Source of the DNA: Adineta vaga
Taxonomy: Eukaryota; Animalia; Rotifera
NCBI GenBank assembly: GCA_021613535.1
Contig: CP075494.1
Span: 9,982,001-10,046,000 of the forward strand
DNA length: 64,000 nt
Reading direction: 5' to 3'
Below, piece by piece: positions 24,583-39,804 of this stretch. The notes below the pieces were generated by a model, which had not been told where the DNA came from, did no database searches, and saw only the letters and a program-made list of their open reading frames with translations. Both the position numbers and the translations under genes were made by a program. Each line of letters starts with the position of its first letter. Position 1 is the stretch's first letter.

Positions 24583-27500
24583 ATGTTCACTAGATCGATT
24601 AGTATGATTGAAGAAGCAGCGTATCCGTTATTACACAAACGATTTATTAAGCGACATCATGTTAAGTTTGTAATTCGAATTTTGGTCGGATTGGCCTTAG
24701 CACATCTTATTGGAGTACAATTTCGACCAAGTTATGCTGCCGTTTCATCGACACGAAAACATCGATTGACAAAAACAACGATTAAAAATGGTGAGAATAC
24801 ATTTCGAATGTCAAATGCAATTTTCTTTCGCTTGCGTTTAGAAATATCTACGGAAGGAAAATCTTCTACGACAATTACTAGTTGGCCATCTGCTCAGATT
24901 AAAAATTGTACTGAACCTAGTAAGTATCATTTAAAATCCTGCTTATATATGGATAGAGAGTTTTTTTTCTTCTCTCTTAACTAAAGCTATCAAGGAATTT
25001 CCTGACGATCTCTTTAGTCAATCTCAACGACGTCACGTAAATAAATGCGCATATTATAAATTGCATAAATGAATGATTTTTCTAGGGAGCAATTTTCTTC
25101 CATTTATTAGCTTGTATTTATACTTTCACGGCGATTGCAATCGTTGTTGATGAATATTTTATTGCTGCACTTGACAAACTTTGTTCGGTAGATAGTATTA
25201 GAAAAGTTTAGATTGATAAATATAATTGACGTATAGACATTAAATCTTGACGAAGATGTTGCTGGTGCAACATTTATGGCTGGTGGATCATCATCACCAG
25301 AACTGTTTACTGCACTTATCGGTAAGAAAATTAAAGACAACAGTTTTTGAATAAATTCGATGGATATTGAAAATTTAGGAATATTTGTGGCGAAAGGCGA
25401 TGTGGGTGTAGGAACTATTGTCGGTTCAGCAGTGTTTAATATCGTATGTGTTATTGGTATTTGTGGTTTATTTGTTAATGAAGTATGTTTTACAATGAAG
25501 TATATGTGAATAAGTATTGAAATTATTTCATTCTAGGCTATTCGATTGACTTGGTGGTATGTAGATTGATTAGTATAAATTTAGGCGTTATTTTTATTCC
25601 ATTTAAATTGATTTCTATTAATCAAAGTCATTGTCGTAAACATAAAAAAGATGAATATTGATTATTGTCGCTCTGTCCGTTTATTATGAATAGATAAACA
25701 TTAATTTATTTTTCGATATAAATTCTCATCTATCATCAATATTCAAGGAAATAACTTAGTTGTGTTCCCTCTTGATTTTTTCGAGGTTTGTTTTTCTTAT
25801 CTCAAAATAGTAATCATCTTCAATTATCAAAAGACGGAAATTGTCCTTTGGGAAAGCATTCTTTTTACACAAAGTCAACTGTGATCTAAAGTGACAAATC
25901 GATGTATTCAAATTCATGATCATCTTCAATGGATCAGAAAAAAATTAAATTGTAATTTTGTTTTCTCATATAGGCCATTATGTCGAGATTCGATTTATTA
26001 TTCTTTTTCAGTTTTGGTTCTCATTATTGTAAGTTAGATTCAAACATTACATTAAGATCATGTATTTTTCTCTTTTCCTAATGAATAGTGTTTATCCGAT
26101 AGTCGAATAACATTATTTGAATCAGTAATTCTTCTAATTATGTATGCAGGATATATTATGATTATGTGGTAAAGTAAATTTTCATTTGTCTTTATTTCGC
26201 TAAAATTCTATTTCATTTCGATAGTAATAATCAAAAATTACAACGCTTAATAGTACAGCGATGGCAAGTATTTCAAACATTCAATGCACCTGAAGAACCA
26301 ATTATAAATTATGCACATACACAAAAGACTTATGGAATGGCAAATAATGATCGTTAGTTATAATTAGAGTTTCCAGGAAAACATTGTTTGTCTAATTTGT
26401 AGAAGAATATGTAAGAGAAATAGGCACTTTGTCTAGAATTCCAATTGATAATCTTATCGCTATGTCGCGTGTTTCAATGGATTTTCGAACGATGATATTT
26501 AAACTAATGATGACAAAACATTTTCAAGGACGTACGAGATTTCAAATGGCTGTTCGATTTGTTATTAGCCAAGTAGGAATTTTTAGAAAAGTAATAGATT
26601 AGAATTTCGTTTTATTTATTTTTCTCTAGACGAAATTACGAGCAGGGCAAGGTGTCATTCGTCCACAAAAACCGATGAATGAAAGACGATTCTCATTCTA
26701 TCAAGGTCGAACAGCAAGGTATGTTTTTGTTGAATATATAACTGACGGGGCAATTACTTTTTAATTTGTATTGATTTAGTTTATTAGCAACAGATTCAAA
26801 TTATAATGCCTGGAAGAATATTCCGAATCACAACTATGATCCCGTTGGTTTTGCTAAATGGACATTTCTTGCGCCAATTAAAATTCTTTATCATTTTACA
26901 ATTCCAGATTGTCGAGATCCAAGGTAAAGAAAGTATTTCATTTTAATAGCTCCAAATCAATAGATAATCGATATAGACGATCTCATTGGTTTCCATTAAC
27001 ATTTGCAATGGCCATATTTTGGTTATCGGTATTGACTTATTTTATGGTTTGGATGGTAACAGTGATTGGTTATACATTTGGTATACCAGATAGTATTATG
27101 GGCATAACATTTCTTGCTGCTGGAAGTAGTATTCCAGATGCACTTAGTAGTGTATTAGTTGTTCGTCAAGGTATGTATGAATATACTTAAAAGAGTTTGA
27201 TGAATGTCATTCGCTGGATTATAATTAGGTCTTGTGGATATGGGTGTTTCAAATACATTTGGCTCGAATGTATTTGATTTATTAATTGGACTTGCTTTGC
27301 CATGGTTTTTTAAAACATTAATCAGTGGCGAAGCAGTACATATTAATTCCAATGGGCTTATGTACGATTCGGTCTTACTTCTTGGTATCGTTGCTGTAAC
27401 AGTAAGAGCAAAGAAACGATAAAGTTTTCATGAAATACATCTTGTAATTTTAGGTATTGAGTATTCATGGTAGAAAATGGTATTTAGATAAATTTTTAGG

Positions 27501-27600
27501 TAGTTTTTTTCTTGCTGTTTATGGAATATTCGTGATTTTTTCATTGTTAATTGAAATGAATGTTTTTGGTTTTGTCAATCCACCAATGTGTCGAACATAA
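24583..27600 (+). CDS. K+-dependent Na+/Ca2+ exchanger (NCKX/SLC24)
   Basis: Alpha-1 repeat [18 protein letters not shown] and [12 protein letters not shown]; alpha-2 repeat [14 protein letters not shown] and [15 protein letters not shown]; C-terminal FVNPPMCRT. Confidence 0.92.
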
Positions 27601-27857
27601 ATTTTCCTTTGATTACATCAAATACATATCGTTTTTTGTTCTTATTGTTGTTGTCATCAATAAAATATATTTAAATAATAATCTATAATTGGAATTGGGG
27701 ATCTTACTTACTAAGAAAGAGAGAGACATCTATCGTTTTGTTTCTGATTGGTATCTATAGCTTACGACACGACCAGATCAGGTTCAGGACTTCGTTGTAT
27801 TATTGTAATGACAAACCAGATTTAATTTAGTCAAATTGTCTCACGAAACTTATTCAA

Positions 27858-30800
27858 ATGGCTGCAATGAATTATGTTGTTACTGTGCAGAGTCCCACAG
27901 CTATTACGGCTCTTGCCACTGGTCATTTTACCTCACCAACTGATTTTAATCTAATTGTTGCCAAGAATACACATTTTGAAATCTATATTATCAGTTCTGA
28001 AGGCTTAAAATTAGTTAAAGATGTATGTGTCTATGGACAAATTCATATTCTCAAATGCTTTCGATTACCGGTAAAGAATATTTGTTATTTTGAAAATGAA
28101 AAATCTAATTTCATTCGTTGTTTTTTGAAATAGAATATGACCAAAGATATTCTGTTTATTTTTACTGAAAAATGTCAAGGAATGATTTTAGATTGTCGAA
28201 AGACGGCTCAAGATCAATATGAAATTTTAACGAAATGTCATGGATTATTAAAAGTAATTGATTACAAAACGTTTCGTTTAGAATCAAATGATTATTTTTT
28301 TTAATATTTGTATAGGATACAGGACGACAAACTGTTCGACAACCATTATGTACAATTGATGTGAAACATGGTCTTATTTTATTACGTATATTTGAAGGTG
28401 TCATTAAATTGATTTATTTAAAAGATTTTTCGTCAAAAGATTCTTCATCAAAAAGTTTAGAAGCATATAATGTCAAGTATGAATTCTATAGAATAATTTT
28501 ATTCTGTAAATGAATACATCATTTCTTTTTCTTTTTAGAGTTGATGAACAAAATATTATTGATATACAATTTTTACCAGGACATCAAAAACCAACATTTA
28601 TTCTTTTACATCCCGTAAAATTACTTTTCTAAGTTTATCAAATTGAAACGATAATATATTGTTTGTGTAGAGAACAAATGATACATCAATGCTTAATCGT
28701 GATCAAGAAGAATATCATATTCGTACTTATCAAGTCGAATTAAAAGAAAGAGATATTTCGAAATTAAGTTGGAAACAAGATATGACATTAAGTGAAGCAT
28801 CATTTGTTATTCCAAGTAAATTTCAACGATTGTTATAGTGATAGAAAAAAAACGGAGAAATTTTCAATTTCTAGTTGGACAAGATACATTCAGTTGTATC
28901 GTTATTGGAAGAAATGCAGTGGCTCTATATAAAGAAAATGATCGACCATTAGAAATTGAATCATCGCTACTTGATGTAATTAAATTTTCTTCTTCTAAGA
29001 ATTCATTTTCTTATACCTTTTATAGGATGAAACTTCTATCATAAGTTATTGTCCTATTGATGAAGATGGTTGTCGTTATTTACTAACTGATTATTCTGGT
29101 AAACTCTATTTACTTGTCCTCGAACGTGATAAACGAAATGGAAGTTCATCAACAACTATAACCGATATGAAAGTAATATATATTTATCTTCCTATATAAT
29201 CCAAAACTTTTGCACCTTTCAGTTGGATCTTCTTGGTGAAACATCAATATGTGAATATGTAACTTATTTAGATAATGGTGTGACATTTATTGGTTCACGT
29301 TTTGGTGATAGTCAACTTATACGAGTACGAAATATCGTTTTTAGATGTTTCAAATTGATTTATTTTGTTTATTTATAGCTTTTACCTGAACCACAGAATG
29401 GAAGTCATCTAGAAATTCTTGAATCATATACAAATCTTGCGCCAATTGTTGATATGTGTGTTGTGGATTTAGAACGGCAAGGTCGACAAGTAAGAAATAA
29501 AAGAAGACTATCAGCGAATTTCTCCTTTTAATTTTTTCAGTTAATCACATGTTCGGGTAATGGAAAAGATTCTTCATTACGTTTTATTCGTACTGGTATC
29601 GGTATTCATGAACATGCATCGATCGATTTAAGAAATATCAAAGGTATAGGAAAACAAGAGATTATTGTGTAATCAAATCCCATATTATTATTATTATTTC
29701 TTTTCCTAGGAATTTGGGCATTGAAAATAGATAATCATTATGATAATCATCTTGTTGTAGCATTTTTTGATCAAACCAGGTAAATCTATCTTTTTTCGAT
29801 AGATTATTTCTATTTGAATTTGCTTTTCAATTAGATTATTTCATTTACAAAATGATGAAATCGAAGAAGTTGAATTATCTGGTTTTGATTTTCAACATCA
29901 AACATTATTCTGTGCTAATGTTATCTCAGATCAGTATTTACAAGTAAAAAAAATAGATTCTTTGATTCGTAATTAAAAATTTCATGTTTAGATAACCACA
30001 CATTCAATTCGTTTAATTGGCAATAATGGAAAAGATTTATTGGTTGAATGGAAAAATGAACAGAATGAAATTACTGTTGGATCATCAAATACAACCCAAT
30101 GTGTTTGTGCAAGTGGAAATCAATTATTTTATTTTGAAATTGGCCGTGCTAGTCTTACTGAAATAAAGTAAGTTCGATTTGCAATATATTAAACATTCGA
30201 AAGGAAATAATTATTGGATTTCTTTATTTTTTAGTAAATGTAAATTACCATATAATATAGCTTGTTTGGATGTTACACCATTAAATCCACAAGAGGAACG
30301 AACAAGTCTTTGTGTTGTTGGACTATGGACACAAATCTCTGTTTGGATTTACCGATTGCCAACACTTGATGTTTTACATAAAGAACCATTGACTTCAGGT
30401 AAGATCTAAGTTAAATCTCGTACATCGATTTTGTATAATTATGCTTGTTTTTAGATGCATTACCACGATCAGTTGTTATGATAACATTTGATTCTCAACC
30501 TTATGTTGTTATTTCATTAGCTGATGGTCCTATCGTCTATTATTTACTTGATGTTGAACAAGGTATTCTGTACGAGCGAAAAAAAGTTTCATTAGGTACA
30601 AAACCAACAACACTTACCATCTGTCAACGTACAGATATCTCACCAAATGCATCATCGTCCTCAACTGATCCTTCAACACAACGTACCGTACTTTTTGCTT
30701 GTAGTGATCGTCCATCTGTAATATCATCATCGAATACAAAACTTGTCTTTTCTGCTGTGAATCTACGTGAAATTGTTTGTATGTGTTCATTTCATTCAGA

Positions 30801-32439
30801 ATTTTATGGCGCAAGTTTAACATTAGTAACTGATGTTGGAGTTATTCTTGGCCGAATTGATGATATACAAAAGTTACATGTACGTTCACTAGTATTAGGT
30901 GAACCAGCACGACGTATTACATTTATGGAAGAAGAAAAGGCTTTTGTTATTTTAACTCAATATATAGACAATTTTCAAACAGATAGTATTACACCAATCA
31001 GTAAACAAGCCCATCAAAAAATTGAATGTCCAACCACAATCAAAAATATAAATGATATTGTACCACCAATACAAAATGAAGTTATTGATTCAATTGTCAT
31101 TTTAGATCAACATACACATGAAGGTATACTATATACTTTAAGTTCATCGATCAATTTGTAGAACAAATTTTGAATAATCATTCGGATGCTTTTATTCTAT
31201 TCTCTTTATTTTAAGCTCGTGTTTCTGTTCGTTTAATGAATCGTGAAGAAGCTTTAAGTCTATGTGTAATTAACTTTGCTGATGATCCATCATCGTCATA
31301 TATTGCTGTTGGTACTGCTATTATATTTGAAGATGAAGATACACCAAAATTTGGTCGTCTTATTTTATATCGTTATAAAAGCGGTCATCTAAATATGATT
31401 ACAGAAAAAGAATTAAATGGTGCACCACATGCTATGTTACCATTTCATGCAAAACTTCTTGTTGCTGTTGGAAGTTCCGTAAGAGAAAGAGAAATTTCAT
31501 TTGATTGTTACTGTGTATTTTGTTTTAGATTCGATTATATAAATTTTCACCTCAAAATCATGAATTAATTCAATTGACACAATATTTAGGACATATTGAT
31601 TGTTTACAAGTTAAAATAAAAGATGATTTTGTTCTATTTAATGATTTAATGAAATCAATTACAGTATTACGATATAATGTTGATGAGGGAAAATTTGAAG
31701 AAGTGAGAAAAGATTTGTTTTTAAGATAAAATTTTGACTTTTCATTGGGTAACTAGATTGCTCATGATGTTCAACCACAATGGACAATGGCATGTGAATT
31801 TTTTGATGATGATACATTTATTTGTGCAGAAGATGGAGGAAATTTAATATCATGTCATAAAGATAGTGGTTCAACAAAGGAAAATGAAAGAAATGTATTA
31901 AAAGAATTGGGATTATGTCATTTAGGAGAGAATATCAATGTGTTTCGTCATGGTAAAAAGCGAATTTGTGTTTATTCGAACTTTTTAAATTTCTTCATTT
32001 AGGTTGTCTTGTAACCCAACAAACAGCTGAAACATCGATTTCTCTTGACACATGTACGTTAATGGGTGGTGTTTCCGGTTATATTGGTCTTCTTCTTCAA
32101 TTAACACCGCCATTATATCAGTTACTTATGTCATTACAATTAGCTATAGCTGACAATGTTCCCAGTGTTGGTAAAATCGATCATGGTACATGGCGTTCAT
32201 TTGAATCCGATGGTCGATCCGATGTTTCTTGTGGCTTTGTTGATGGTGATCTAATTGAAACATATCTTGATTTACCGAAAACAGTACAACAAGAACTTAT
32301 TACAGATCTACACGTATGTTTTTAAAAACATTCACTTAGTTCTATGTTTTGTTTTTTCTAGGGTGAAAATAACACACCAATTTATACAACAGTAGAAGAA
32401 CTAGTCAAAATAATCGAAGAACTTGCACGAATACATTGA
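27858..32439 (+). CDS. DDB1: DNA damage-binding protein 1
   Basis: [12 protein letters not shown]...[73 protein letters not shown]. Confidence 0.95.
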
Positions 32440-32572
32440 ACTATACATAAATAAATGTGGTCGTCTGTGTCTATATTTTTCGTCTTTTTTTTGTAATACT
32501 TGATTTGATCAAAAGACAAAACTAACAGACAATTCTTTTTCTAAACCTGCATTATCAGTTCTCTTACTTTAG

Positions 32573-33774
32573 ATGGTTCTCATCATTGGCGAACAGGTCT
32601 ATTCGCGTAAATGTACATTGGAAGATCTCGAAGAACATGCTGATTTGATTAGTTCTTCGAGAGAATTTGCGAAATCAAATGAATATAAACAATTACCAGA
32701 TGAAATTTCTCGAACAATTTATGTTCATCAACGAGAGTTTGCTGTGATAGGACGGAGTGATCCAAATGGATTTCATTTAATTGGAAGTGATGATGCAACA
32801 ACATGTCATATACTTGTACTTGATAATCAATGTGCTGTGGGTGTGATACATTTAGATGGAGAAGAAACTGATGAAAGTTTAGAAAATATGTTAGACGAAA
32901 TGAAAAAATATGCACCGGATAATACAAATTATGATGCCTATCTTGTTGGTAAGTAGAATAATGGAGCGAATAAAAGATGAGTTGTAACTTGTATGTTAAA
33001 CAGTATCTTCGTTCGACATAGAAAGAAAAGAGAAAGTTGGTCATGTCTATATCCCACGTTAAAAAAACAAACGATATAAAATCTTGTTTTTTCCAACAGT
33101 ATAATAACAGTGTACAATACTATGAAAATTCTACTGATAGACAAAAGATCTAGTTTGATTCTATTTTCATTCCAGGTGGTTTTATCGATGGTTCAACTCG
33201 ACAATATTCTCACAAATTAAGTAATGAAGTTCTCAAAGCATTTTCTTCGATGAAAAACGTTTCATTTCATCTTAAACTTGCTGCTATAACACCGTACAAC
33301 GATCATATAATCAACAAGATTCATTATCCACTTATTTATGGTATCTGTTTTGATGTTAACACGAAAACAATTCGTAAAATGAATTTTATCGATTTTGGAC
33401 CAGCATTTCGTTTACGTTCAGTGTATCTTTCGGTTCATACTCATTGTGCTTGGTGTATCTATTCATCTTTACAAGGAATAGTTACAATCAAAGAATTTTC
33501 CATTGACAAAAATATAGTTAAACGTTATTATGAACCTTTGTATTTATATTATTTTTATAATGATCAAAAATTATTATCAATGACTTCGACATCACCTGAA
33601 CAGGAACGTTCTTCATATCTAACACATATAAAAAAGAATATTTTATTTATTTTGAAATATTTTAAAGAACTATCTGAATGGTTTGATAAACAAACACATT
33701 CAATTGTTTATTATCGATTAAATGAAAAATGGATTACTAACAATACGAATGTTATTGAAGACGTTGAAATTTAA
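32573..33774 (+). CDS. NTAN1: Protein N-terminal asparagine amidohydrolase, 2 exons
   Basis: YVHQREFAV, IGSDDATTCHILVL, HLDG, LVGGFID, STSPEQE. Confidence 0.88.
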
Positions 33775-33818
33775 TAAATCTTCTTTTTTTTTTTAAAGAT
33801 AAGAATTAGTTTTTCACC

Positions 33819-36800
33819 ATGTGGAGCAGATTAGTTTCAGTAAATCGACAATGTCTTACATCATCGATGAAGATATTTACACGATTACAATCATCAACTC
33901 AATATTATCCAATTAACGATGATGTTTATGGTCTTACTGATGATCAAAAACAGGTTTGGGAGCATAAATACCTATCTTGGTTCATTAATATTAGGTTTTC
34001 TTTTTGAATAGTTACGCGAAACGGTATTTGCATTTGTACAAAAGGAATTAGCACCATACGCCAATGATATCGATAAAAATAATAACTTCCCAAAACTTCG
34101 TGTAAATTTTACATAATTAAAATACTTGAATACAATGTGATCAATGTTTTATTATAGGAATTTTGGAAAAAAATTGGTGATCTTGGTCTTTTGGGTATTA
34201 CAGCACCGGGTAAATATCGAGTTTTATCTTTACAATAGCATCATTGAAGAGTGATAAAAATGCATCTATGAAATCGACATATCTGATCTGATCATTCTTT
34301 ATCATTATAGTTGAATATGGTGGTTTGGGTTTACATTATACCGAACATTGTATTGCTATGGAAGAAATCTCTCGTGCAAGTGGTAGTATTGCTCTCAGTT
34401 ATGGTGCACATTCAAATCTTTGCGTAAATCAAATCGTTCGAAATGCAAATGATGAGCAAAAACAAAAATATCTACCGAAAGTAGGTCGATTCTTTTCTTC
34501 GATTTCAATTGTATTTTTTTCTTTATCTTTTAGCTTATCACTGGTGAACATTTCGGAGCATTAGCAATGTCTGAACCAAATTCTGGTTCTGATGTTGTTT
34601 CAATGAAATTAACTGCAACAAAAAAAGGTTTGTTAACGATTTTATTTCTTTTCATTGATCATAATTGAAGGATTCTTAATGATCATTATTTTCATATTAT
34701 TCTAATTGTTCGATATCAACGCTCGTATTTATATATCAATATTTCGTAAATGTCGTTTTTTTTAATGAATGATGTATAAGATGCTTGATTGATTGTTTGT
34801 AAAGCGAAAAAGAAAGACGTACGTCATATTAACCAAAAATGATCTTGGGAAATGGTGTCGGTTTTTACTCTCCTGCATACGGATCCGCACCGTTCATTGG
34901 TTTATTGACCAATTGCAATCAAGGACTTCAATCTACTCAACAACCTGTTCAACCATCCTCTTTTTATAATCCAACTTATCAACAACAGTTACCAACACAT
35001 CCATTATTAAAAAATGAACCAGATAATGGTCCATCTTTTAAACTCTATGATTTTAATTCGAATAATCAAAGTGAATTAATTCGTCTTCTCTTTTATTATG
35101 CGGGTGTTTCATTTAAAGATAAACGTGTTAAACAAGATGAATGGAATCGAGTGAAAGATAATGTACCTATTCAACAATTACCGATCTTACGTGTTAACAG
35201 TCATTTTAAAATCTATTATTTCAATTCTATTGTTCGATACTTAGCACGAGAATTTTCTCTCTATGGAACAGAAAATCAAGAATATGCATTAGTAGATATG
35301 ATTTTTGAAACGACTTCTTTATTTCAAGACAAACTCTTTGAACAAATTGGTAATTCATCCAATGATGAAGAACGTAAAACACTTCTCACACAATTCATTA
35401 CAAATCATGCAGGAAATCATTTGAATAAATTAGAAAAATTCTTTAAAATATTCCATCGTAATGGTCCATTTTATTTAGGTTCGCAAATAACTTTAGCTGA
35501 TTTAATTGTTTATCAAACGATTAATTATCTAATTGATATTGATCCTAAATTACTTGATAATTATTCTCATTTGAAAGAGGCACGTATTCGTTTAGAAAAG
35601 CATCCTCAAATAATTAATTATTTAAATGCAAAAAAATATCCGAAAAACAAGAAAAAACGTCATATTACTCTTTCACCAACATTAAATAATGTTTATCATT
35701 ATTATCCACGCTATCCATCTCATGATGGACGCAAACTTTGTCGACGTCGTCATCAATCAAAAGAACCACCATTATTTGTTCAGACAAGAAGAGATTCGAA
35801 AGCATCTTCTTCTTCTTCTTCATCAAAAGAAAAGGAGATTAAACCTCCTTCACAAGGTAAACAAGAATCAAGATCAACTAGTATTCAAAAGGAAGAAAAA
35901 GAATCAACACCACCACGACCAGTTGATATTATACCTCAACCACCACCAATTCCTGAAACGATACCACAGCCTCCACCTTTGATTGCTTCTGTTCCATCAA
36001 CACTACCTCTGCGAATAGCAGAAGTTATTCCACAACCACCGCCTGTGACGACAGTGAAAGCTGAAGAGAAATCGGAATCTATCGTCGATGGCTAATTATC
36101 AATGCGAAAGACGATAGACATAACAAGAACTTTGAATATATTTATGTTTAATTTGATTTTATTCATAATAACAAAGTTTCTCTACGATTTTTCTATATGA
36201 TGAAACAGATGATTGAAATCTTTCTCATTCGTTTTTTTTAATCTAAAAAAGAAACAATTGAATATGATAGGATCTTTTTAGGTGATTATTATGTTCTCAA
36301 TGGAAGTAAATTTTGGATTACAAATGGACCGGATGCTGATGTAGTTGTTGTTTATGCTAAAACGAATCCTTCAAGTGACAAACCACAACATGGTATATCA
36401 GCATTTCTCGTGGAAAAAGTATTGATGATAAAAAACAGAGAATCTAGTATGAGAAAAACGAACGATATATGTTCTTTTAGGGCATGGAAGGTTTTTCCAC
36501 AGCACAAAAACTTGATAAAATGGGTATGCGTGGATCGAATACCTGTGAGCTTCTATTTGAAGATTGCAAAATTCCCGGTAAATTACTGTAGGATACATTG
36601 ATTTCATAAATGAAAATTATTCTATTAGCAAAAAATTTAATGGGAAAAGAAAATCATGGTGTTTATGTGTTAATGAGTGGTTTAGATTTTGAACGTGTTG
36701 TTCTTGCAGCTGGCCCTGTTGGGTAAGATTTATTCATTACTATACCATAGAAAATTATATTTCAAAAGTACAACATATCATCTATACTGATCTCAACTTA

Positions 36801-37310
36801 TTTTCTTTAGTTTGATGCAAGCTTGTTGTGATACTGCATTCGAATATGCTCATGTTCGAAAACAATTCGGTAATCCAATAGGTACCTTTCAAGTAAGACT
36901 CTTCTACGATTTGGTTTGATATTTTGGAATCATCTTTAGTTAATACAAGGGAAAATAGCTGACATGTATACAACATTAAATGCTTGTCGTTCGTATTTAT
37001 ACACTACAGCTAAAGCTGTTGATCGAAATATTATCAGTAAAAAGGTAAAAAGAAAAAAATGTTCATCACTATTCTATTGAATAAACTATTTTAGGATTGT
37101 GCTGGTGTTATCTTGTATTGTGCTGAAAAGGCAACTCAATTGTGTCTCGATGGTATTCAAATACTTGGCGGTAATGGCTACATTAATGATTATCCAACAA
37201 GTCGTCTTCTACGTGATGCTAAGTTATATGAAATCGGTGCAGGAACAAGTGAAGTTCGTCGAACTTTGATTGCTCGTACGATTAGTAGCGAATATGGTAT
37301 TAAATCTTAA
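33819..37310 (+). CDS. IVD: Isovaleryl-CoA dehydrogenase, mitochondrial
   Basis: Transit peptide, [73 protein letters not shown]; large intron 34628-36281. Confidence 0.95.
34839..36095 (+). CDS. Intronless sigma-class GST-like protein with a Gln-rich N-terminal and a basic/Pro-rich C-terminal extension, nested in an IVD intron
   Basis: FKLYDFN...[55 protein letters not shown]; 418-aa uninterrupted ORF. Confidence 0.82.
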   Translation: MILGNGVGFYSPAYGSAPFIGLLTNCNQGLQSTQQPVQPSSFYNPTYQQQLPTHPLLKNEPDNGPSFKLYDFNSNNQSELIRLLFYYAGVSFKDKRVKQDEWNRVKDNVPIQQLPILRVNSHFKIYYFNSIVRYLAREFSLYGTENQEYALVDMIFETTSLFQDKLFEQIGNSSNDEERKTLLTQFITNHAGNHLNKLEKFFKIFHRNGPFYLGSQITLADLIVYQTINYLIDIDPKLLDNYSHLKEARIRLEKHPQIINYLNAKKYPKNKKKRHITLSPTLNNVYHYYPRYPSHDGRKLCRRRHQSKEPPLFVQTRRDSKASSSSSSSKEKEIKPPSQGKQESRSTSIQKEEKESTPPRPVDIIPQPPPIPETIPQPPPLIASVPSTLPLRIAEVIPQPPPVTTVKAEEKSESIVDG

Positions 37311-37673
37311 AAAAAATGAAGCTAAGAAAACTATTTCATGTGAACGAGATAGATTTGCCACGAATGTTGTGGATTTTTTTCTGTTCATATTGCTTTTCAT
37401 CAATAAAAGTCAAGTTTTTGAAACTATAGGATTAGATTAATCTATATAAAAAAAGAATATTTGATCAAATAGAGTACAAGGATCATACGAAATAGTTTTC
37501 TTTCTTTCCAGTTGATTACCTCGAATGATATCATAGAAAACTAGTCTGACGATGAATATATACATATATAACAATCGAGGTCATAGTTATCGTTCTATAA
37601 GATCGATATATATATATATAAGTTTAATCAAATAAGCTACATAGTCACTTGGATATTTTATTCGATCGTAAAG

Positions 37674-39804
37674 ATGGTTTGTATATCGAGGTCTAATTTA
37701 ATAGAATTTATTTGTTTGGGTTTATAGTTTTTATTTAGTTTTGCTTTGATATCAGTTTTAACTCTGAGTATTCATGGACATAGTCCACAATTACGTAAAT
37801 AATCATTAGAATTAAATTATATAACTTAATTAAACGTACGATTATTAGGTACATTTCCTACGAATGAAGATAAGACCAATGAATTCTTTGGTCGCTTTCA
37901 AAAGTTAATCGATCAAGCTAATCAACAAATGTCAATTTCTAGTCTCTCGTAAATTATCATCAATTATTTTTGATTGTTATAAGATTTTGTTTGTATTTTT
38001 CCTCTCTAGTGATGATTTTTCAGATGGTCGTCAAGATGAATTAAGTTAGTAAAGTTCTTGTTTGAATTGTTTATTTTTCTGAGAAGAATAAACTTTCCCA
38101 TTTTTAGCATTCATTTCATGTGATCGTATTCGTCCAAATGTCAAAAATGCTTATCCAGCAGATAAAACCAAATATTTCGTCTGTCGAAAAAATCAAAGTT
38201 ATGAAATTTATACCTGTCCAAATGGTGGCATCTTTGATGATAATGAAAAAGCCTGTATTGATTTATGTCAACAAAATAATCCATGTTTAAATCAAGGACA
38301 ATGTATTATTTTACCGGATTTGAAATTAGAATGTGTTTGTCGACGAGACTGGACAGGTGAAAGATGTGAAGTTCCATTAAGTTCATGTGCAAAGAACCCA
38401 TGTGGTGCAAATAATGAATGTCGTATGCTTAAAACATTAGATTATGATCAAGATTATGTTTGTATTTGTGATAAACAAGAAAGTTATGGTAAAACTTGTC
38501 AACGAAGTATGTGATTTATGGTTCTAAAAGAACATATTATTGATATTTGCTGCTTTTTTTAGCTGTACCAAATCCTTGTTTAAATAATGTTCAACAATTT
38601 CATTCATTTGCATTTAGTCGACATGCTTATATTAATTGTGATGATGAATTAATTTTTTTTCAACCATGTAATTCACTTCTTTATTGGAATCAAGAAGAAA
38701 AACGTTGTGATCGATCATTACCAGATATTTTACGAACACCGTTTTTAAATTTAAAAACTCACAATAGACAAAATTTTCAATTTAATCGTCCACAACTTAT
38801 GCAACGACCAGATCAAGTTAAAGGTGGCAATGGGGACGATTTAGTTGTTGTTATGATTAAAAAACCAATCACTTTTCAAGTGACAGAATGGCAACAAACA
38901 AGTAAGATACTAATAAAATGAGAAGGTAAAGTTTTTCTCTCTATTTTAACATTTTCTTCTCTATTTAGAAATACCAATGAATCAACAACAATCAAGTATG
39001 GATACAAAACAATGGGAAGGTATGTCACTTTTTAACAAAAACAAAATCTGAACTAATCAATTGGGAAATTAGCACGAGTTCCAAATGTACGACTACGAAC
39101 TGATCAACGTTTTCCTTCTCAATTTCCAAGTAATATTTTTCACTTTTCTCCGAATACTTTCATTCAATATGATCAACATTATAGTTCAAACACCATCAAT
39201 GCTCAAGAAACCATTCATGCAAACAACAACACCAATGCCCACAAACGTTTTTCGATTAGAAGGTTGTGTTAAACAAGAACAATTCTTTTAATACTAATTC
39301 ATTTATCATTTAGGTTTCGGAAATAAAAATACTGGACGATCACAAATGAATGAAAACGGTAGGAAAATCTATTTTAAAAAGAAATATTTCATTTTATCAA
39401 AATCATTTCACCAGTTATGACAAATCCGCAATTTCAACAAGGTAAAATTTCATTTCTATAAATACTTTACATATCAAATCTTTAGGTTCAATGGAATCAT
39501 TCGCTTCAGAAATGATAACAACTACACCAAGTAAGAAAATAGTTAAACATCATTTTTGATATACAATTCTTCATTTAGAACCAATCACACATACATTGCT
39601 TGGATGGAAAACTAATCAACAAGGTATACGAAATCGATTTTAATGAATAAGATTATTTTCTAATTACAACATATTTAGAAATTTCAAATCAAATGGCTGA
39701 TCCAAATAATTTGAGTACGTCAAATTTGATAATATTATTCTTAATTAATAATCATTTATTTAGATACACCTTCATCATTTCAACTCAGATCATGGAAAGA
39801 ATGA
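37674..39804 (+). CDS. Secreted protein with chitin-binding type 2-like and EGF-like domains and a micro-exon-encoded tail
   Basis: Signal MFLFSFALISVLTLSIHG, YPADKTKYFVC...TCPNGGIFDDNEKAC, EGF repeats PCLNQGQC...CVCRRDWTGERC, second CBM14-like AYINC...QPCNSLLYWNQEEKRC. Confidence 0.75.

Follow-up and report, generated by a model that had tools for sequence, protein, structure and literature searches.

A probable spliced-leader operon of DDB1, NTAN1 and IVD in Adineta vaga, a bdelloid rotifer

The window analysed here, a 64-kb stretch of the Adineta vaga genome, carries three functionally unrelated housekeeping genes, DDB1, NTAN1 and IVD, which lie head to tail on the plus strand (Table 1). 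A previous reading of this DNA, made from its letters alone (the sequence-only reading), had proposed that the three co-oriented genes form an operon whose transcript is resolved by spliced-leader (SL) trans-splicing. Its coordinates are accurate, as are its intercistronic gaps of 133 nt between DDB1 and NTAN1 (gap 1) and 44 nt between the NTAN1 stop at 33772–33774 and the IVD ATG (gap 2) and the positions of its motifs, namely AATAAA at 32450 and 33773, ACTAAC at 32521, and AG dinucleotides ending at 32572, 33798 and 33809. Our local gene model of DDB1 has 19 introns and encodes 1162 amino acids, a length equal to that of the public A. vaga protein P0193. The protein encoded by exon 2 of NTAN1 matches an A. 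vaga protein at 100% identity. A search of the A. vaga genome detected a single copy of NTAN1 and a single clear copy of IVD, and an Rfam search of positions 27500–38000 gave no match.

Table 1. Features of the DDB1-NTAN1-IVD region, in window coordinates; genes of the cluster and their signals first, neighbouring features last.
Feature	Position	Strand	Remarks
DDB1	27858..32439	+	First gene; stop 32437-32439; Pfam RSE1/DDB1 propellers
Gap 1 (DDB1 3' untranslated region / intercistronic)	32440..32572	+	133 nt
NTAN1 (N-terminal Asn amidohydrolase)	32573..33774	+	324 amino acids; one intron, 32949-33175; PF14736
IVD (isovaleryl-CoA dehydrogenase)	33819..37310	+	Third gene; identity from homology
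CCAAT box (ATTGG on +)	27747..27751	-	111 nt 5' of DDB1 ATG; putative operon promoter element
AATAAA, possible DDB1 poly(A) signal	32450..32455	+	In gap 1 of 4/14 loci
Conserved element (U-tract, TGTAA, TTGATTYRATC)	32485..32510	+	51-86 nt 5' of NTAN1 ATG
Orphan 3' splice acceptor AG	32571..32572	+	Abuts NTAN1 ATG; inferred SL acceptor
AATAAA over NTAN1 stop	33773..33778	+	Overlaps stop in 11/18 loci
T11-AAAG, presumptive SL acceptor of IVD	33784..33798	+	24 nt past NTAN1 stop, 20 nt before IVD ATG
GST-like open reading frame	34839..36095	+	Nested in IVD intron 34628-36281; intronless; 418 amino acids; Pro/Lys-rich tail; Pfam GST
IVD AATAAA (37402), acceptor-like CAG (ending 37511), EGF-repeat gene ATG (37674)	37402..37676	+	Strong acceptor score

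The cluster is conserved among bdelloids. The order DDB1-NTAN1-IVD, with the genes adjacent and co-oriented, is found in A. steineri, Rotaria sordida, R. sp. Silwood1, R. magnacalcarata and several metagenomic bdelloids, and additional short bdelloid contigs carry the NTAN1-IVD adjacency. Conservation of gene order, which the sequence-only reading had named as a check on the operon, is thus seen in Adineta, Rotaria and metagenomic bdelloids, with one copy from Didymodactylos carnosus as an exception. Gap 1 measures 105–155 nt across 14 loci and gap 2 measures 18–150 nt across 18 loci (18, 19 and 22 nt in three lineages), where the compared loci, which share ancestry, are not independent. In the window and in its relatives, the intercistronic distances are as short as those expected of an SL-resolved operon. 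The NTAN1 intron ranges from ~50 nt to 1.9 kb among bdelloids; it is missing in one metagenomic lineage that keeps the cluster (L057–L059) and also in the D. carnosus copy (L082), where the cluster is not kept. The gene located 5' of DDB1 differs between bdelloid lineages, which fits DDB1 as the first gene. In the window this neighbor is a co-oriented Na/Ca-exchanger gene (~26400–27600, plus strand) that ends 257 nt 5' of the DDB1 ATG; it is shared with locus L045 and not with L012, L044 or L046. The CCAAT box noted ahead of DDB1 is indeed present, on the minus strand, and CCAAT or ATTGG occurs at −78 to −124 relative to the DDB1 ATG in 6/6 loci, the ohnolog on C2 included.

Trans-splicing of the leader onto IVD is borne out in a related bdelloid. 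The RNA evidence consists entirely of assembled public contigs of related bdelloids, which are classed as RNA because they are without introns. One of these, the IVD contig L056, is fully spliced and encodes 418 amino acids, and its first 8 bases are identical to the last 8 of the SL. In a second contig (L047), which is genomic DNA and 98–99% identical to L056 in the exons, the NTAN1 stop is followed by 28 T-rich nucleotides and an AG (a T-tract followed by TAG, 30 nt past the stop), and then by the bases that come after the leader in L056. Six of the 8 leader bases in L056 are non-genomic and match the leader; at a fixed position, chance would produce such a match about once in 4000. Since the leader bases stand exactly where L047 has its acceptor, the SL is joined at the site orthologous to 33798.

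The A. vaga genome also contains the SL genes that such an operon would require. The published 23-nt rotifer leader has 59 matches in the genome at 1–2 mismatches, and a reversed control has 0. All 30 SL copies that were read, mostly in divergent pairs, show a GT donor after the SL exon and a conserved body of ~80 nt. The matches are located at C5 9.88–9.93 Mb, C5 10.91–10.93 Mb, C2 8.68–8.69 Mb and other sites (L013–L042), with the members of the divergent SL RNA gene pairs ~130 nt apart and one cluster 56–98 kb upstream of the window. The SL exon carries a one-base variant in 8–9 copies, and L029 contains a truncated copy. Both exon forms share the 8 nt found on IVD. Genomic copies of the SL begin with T where the published leader has G, the G having probably been read from the cap.

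The acceptor features in gap 2 agree with the junction observed in the relative. With splice matrices built from local introns (32 modelled, three mis-modelled around the nested GST-like gene), the AG ending at 33798 scores in the top 0.3% of plus-strand AGs, and a T-rich AG followed by AT is seen 2–28 nt 5' of the IVD ATG in 18/18 loci. The sequence-only reading had offered this AG and the one ending at 33809 as acceptors; the former holds, while the latter was rejected, being weak by the matrix and not the conserved site. A further AG in the gap ends at 33803. The AATAAA over the NTAN1 stop and the T-tract that follows it are confirmed. On the basis of the geometry, this AATAAA would put cleavage at or near the 33798 acceptor, and the two positions are compatible with a poly(A) site that abuts an SL acceptor.

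In gap 1, the AG reported to abut the NTAN1 ATG is likewise confirmed, and it is immediately 5' of the ATG in 13 of the 14 loci and 2 nt before it in the remaining one. The acceptor is modest by the matrix, where 15% of AGs score as high; the case for it comes from the conserved position of the AG and not from the matrix score. Gap 1 contains eight GT dinucleotides, none of which reaches the 10th percentile of real donors. A contig from another related bdelloid (L043) is without two DDB1 introns and the NTAN1 intron, yet the stop of DDB1, a gap of 120 nt and the acceptor are all present in it. This contig shows that RNA covers gap 1 and speaks against the gap being a constitutive cis-intron. 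Because the lineage with an intronless NTAN1 keeps its DDB1 introns, the three missing introns in L043 still point to RNA. Searches of public contigs and protein homologs found no SL-bearing NTAN1 contig.

The remaining motifs of gap 1 are of uneven conservation. The TTGATTYRATC-type element is present in 11/14 loci, has two matches in the 64-kb window when both strands are searched, and is altered in the ohnolog that lost NTAN1. Base pairing of this element with the SL RNA is unsupported, as the best match of 8 nt is equalled by ~25% of shuffles. The AATAAA at 32450 exists as described without being conserved. The ACTAAC that had been read as branch-like is correctly placed, but it was rejected as a branch point, with CTAAC seen in 2/14 loci and in 0/32 modelled introns. 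Neither this motif nor the AATAAA of gap 1 stands out from chance.

The gene order, the shortness of the gaps, the two acceptors and the CCAAT ahead of DDB1 are more strongly conserved among bdelloids than chance would give. We conclude that the cluster is very probably an operon, and we consider it likely that DDB1-NTAN1-IVD is a polycistronic unit resolved by SL trans-splicing. In such a unit, RNA polymerase II would start at the CCAAT promoter ahead of DDB1 and transcribe all three genes, so that one promoter would drive them all. Formation of the 3' end of each upstream cistron would be coupled to trans-splicing of the 23-nt SL at 32572 and 33798, and NTAN1 and IVD would emerge as capped monocistronic mRNAs. 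At the NTAN1-IVD junction the poly(A) site and the acceptor would probably be near-coincident, in the tunicate/SL1-type manner. Three mRNAs would arise from the unit, perhaps four if an EGF-repeat gene downstream of IVD is included. We infer the SL on NTAN1, the poly(A) positions and the behavior of A. vaga as that of its relatives.

Several observations weigh against the operon. The evidence for the SL junction is one contig with 6 non-genomic bases, from a species other than A. vaga. The read-through precursor that had been predicted finds a counterpart across DDB1-NTAN1 in the spliced L043; however, this contig is an assembly, not a single molecule; its 3' end is repeated, it contains a frameshift, and it could join overlapping transcripts. 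No contig spanning NTAN1-IVD as RNA was found among the public bdelloid contigs. Finally, the one D. carnosus NTAN1 copy that was fetched stands alone, with no DDB1 within 9 kb upstream and no IVD within 2.4 kb downstream (the other copies in that genome are unchecked), yet it retains an acceptor-like pyrimidine-AG 3 nt before its ATG.

The main rival, which we consider unlikely, is that NTAN1 and/or IVD are compact monocistronic genes whose transcripts are SL trans-spliced but start from promoters of their own within the gene upstream (outron overlap), or that internal promoters make the cluster a hybrid operon. Bdelloids commonly use SL trans-splicing, which affects over half of their transcripts (PMC1925144), and the conserved TTGATTYRATC element might act as a promoter motif; the standalone D. 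carnosus NTAN1 and the possible origin of L043 from overlapping RNAs are also in keeping with internal promoters. However, a promoter for IVD would need to sit in the NTAN1 coding sequence or in an intron that shrinks to ~50 nt in some bdelloids and is absent in the L057–L059 lineage. In addition, gap 1 is without CCAAT in 13 of the 14 loci, and the adjacency is tight in every Adineta, Rotaria and metagenomic bdelloid locus examined.

Rather less probable is a bdelloid-specific processing code, in which the U-tract, TGTAA and TTGATTYRATC would have evolved independently into a Ur-like signal, perhaps together with an SL variant dedicated to it, with a spacer-less junction following in the same unit. 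If true, this would represent a convergent SL2-like system outside nematodes. We regard as very improbable the proposal that acceptor 32572 is cis-spliced from the last DDB1 donor (32314), giving an in-frame DDB1-NTAN1 chimera for which the gene order would have been kept. The donor and the acceptor are both phase 0, and the public A. ricciae model P0192 has exactly that junction. However, the other A. ricciae model (P0190) joins elsewhere, as expected for predictor fusions of operon genes (PMC7986045), L043 retains the last DDB1 exon together with the stop and the gap, and the IVD acceptor has no conserved frame, given its variable distance to the ATG, and takes the SL. That independent genes without trans-splicing merely carry chance motifs in an AT-rich, compact genome is scarcely credible: AATAAA does occur ~1.5 times per kb, and ACTAAC and the first AATAAA are unconserved, but the conserved acceptors and the SL junction on IVD speak against it, and for IVD it is already refuted in a relative.

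The genes around and within the cluster bear on the extent of the operon. An ohnolog block in A. vaga (L004/L005, C2 ~8.405–8.417 Mb, minus strand) has kept DDB1, the GST-like gene and the EGF-repeat gene and has lost NTAN1 and IVD, and it illustrates the decay of the unit after genome duplication. The GST-like gene of this block outlived the loss of its host gene. In most bdelloids the GST-like gene is nested within IVD on the same strand, and the L047 species lacks the intron as well as the gene. Its open reading frame is preceded by a conserved TTTTTAATGARTA-like element, without a conserved acceptor; the gene probably uses a separate promoter rather than belonging to the operon. In L046 (12387–15015), a tandem partial duplication contains the 3' part of NTAN1 and a second IVD copy without the nested gene. 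Downstream of IVD, the EGF-repeat secreted-protein gene (37402–39300, plus strand) shows a conserved CAATCGAG-GT donor in its 5' untranslated region. L056, an assembly like L043, extends beyond the AATAAA of IVD and takes in a spliced EGF-repeat gene; in the window, the ortholog of that gene comes next after IVD and is a possible fourth operon member.

Public gene models are fused at several of these junctions. DDB1 and NTAN1 are joined in A. ricciae (P0190, P0192) and NTAN1 and IVD in R. magnacalcarata (P0083), and these fusions are probably annotation artefacts of the tight layout. The layout accounts for the fused models and is a reason to re-annotate bdelloid genomes with the SL taken into account. 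Models P0035 and P0052 fuse the nested GST-like gene to IVD.

Nematodes, tunicates, flatworms and chaetognaths are known to have operons resolved by an SL. For Rotifera, operons are listed as "not determined" in one table (PMC2481426), a 2025 paper (PMC12460157) names rotifers in a single sentence about trans-splicing and operonic transcription, and operons go unmentioned in the A. vaga genome paper. Our literature search found no paper documenting rotifer operons, with earlier mention in subscription papers being possible. Operon-like clusters in A. ricciae may, reportedly, be mentioned by Boschetti in J Exp Biol in 2011 or in reviews citing that article. The DDB1-NTAN1-IVD cluster works like known SL operons and is apparently undocumented in Rotifera. 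A conserved operon with an SL junction observed in a relative provides an extra lineage for testing operon origins, and the standalone D. carnosus NTAN1 suggests that this operon was assembled from genes that were already trans-spliced.

[quoted passage not shown] The NTAN1-IVD junction is similar, with AATAAA over the stop and an acceptor 16–30 nt later in many lineages. The rotifer cluster differs in phylum and in the SL, in the longer gap 1 with its conserved element, and in that the poly(A) position here is deduced. In C. elegans SL2-type operons, by comparison, the intercistronic region is ~100–130 nt, with Ur motifs ~50 nt upstream (PMC7668243). Gap 1 is comparable to this in length and U-richness, with its conserved element located 51–86 nt upstream of the acceptor region, and a U-rich spacer of ~100 nt is possible there. 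The sequence of the element is different, however, and an SL2-like leader is only hypothetical here. At NTAN1-IVD such a spacer is impossible, with 24 nt from stop to acceptor in the window. The nematode operon layout invoked by the sequence-only reading calls for correction at gap 2, which, at only 18–22 nt in three lineages, resembles the spacer-less tunicate/SL1-type more than nematode SL2. The operons of the chaetognath Paraspadella gotoi, a fellow gnathiferan, also hold housekeeping genes in close-set SL operons, with gaps <250 bp plus an SL and no operon-specific leader (PMC12460157), while the leaders and genes differ. Because no conserved SL was found in an expressed sequence tag study of the monogonont Brachionus (PMC1925144), a common origin with the chaetognath operons is not established. 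Finally, SL trans-splicing in bdelloids, as relayed from Pouchkina-Stantcheva and Tunnacliffe (2005) in PMC3795323 and PMC1925144, employs a 23-nt leader from an SL RNA of ~100 nt. The leader at this cluster is the same; what differs is that, in the relative, it lands 30 nt behind the stop codon of another gene.

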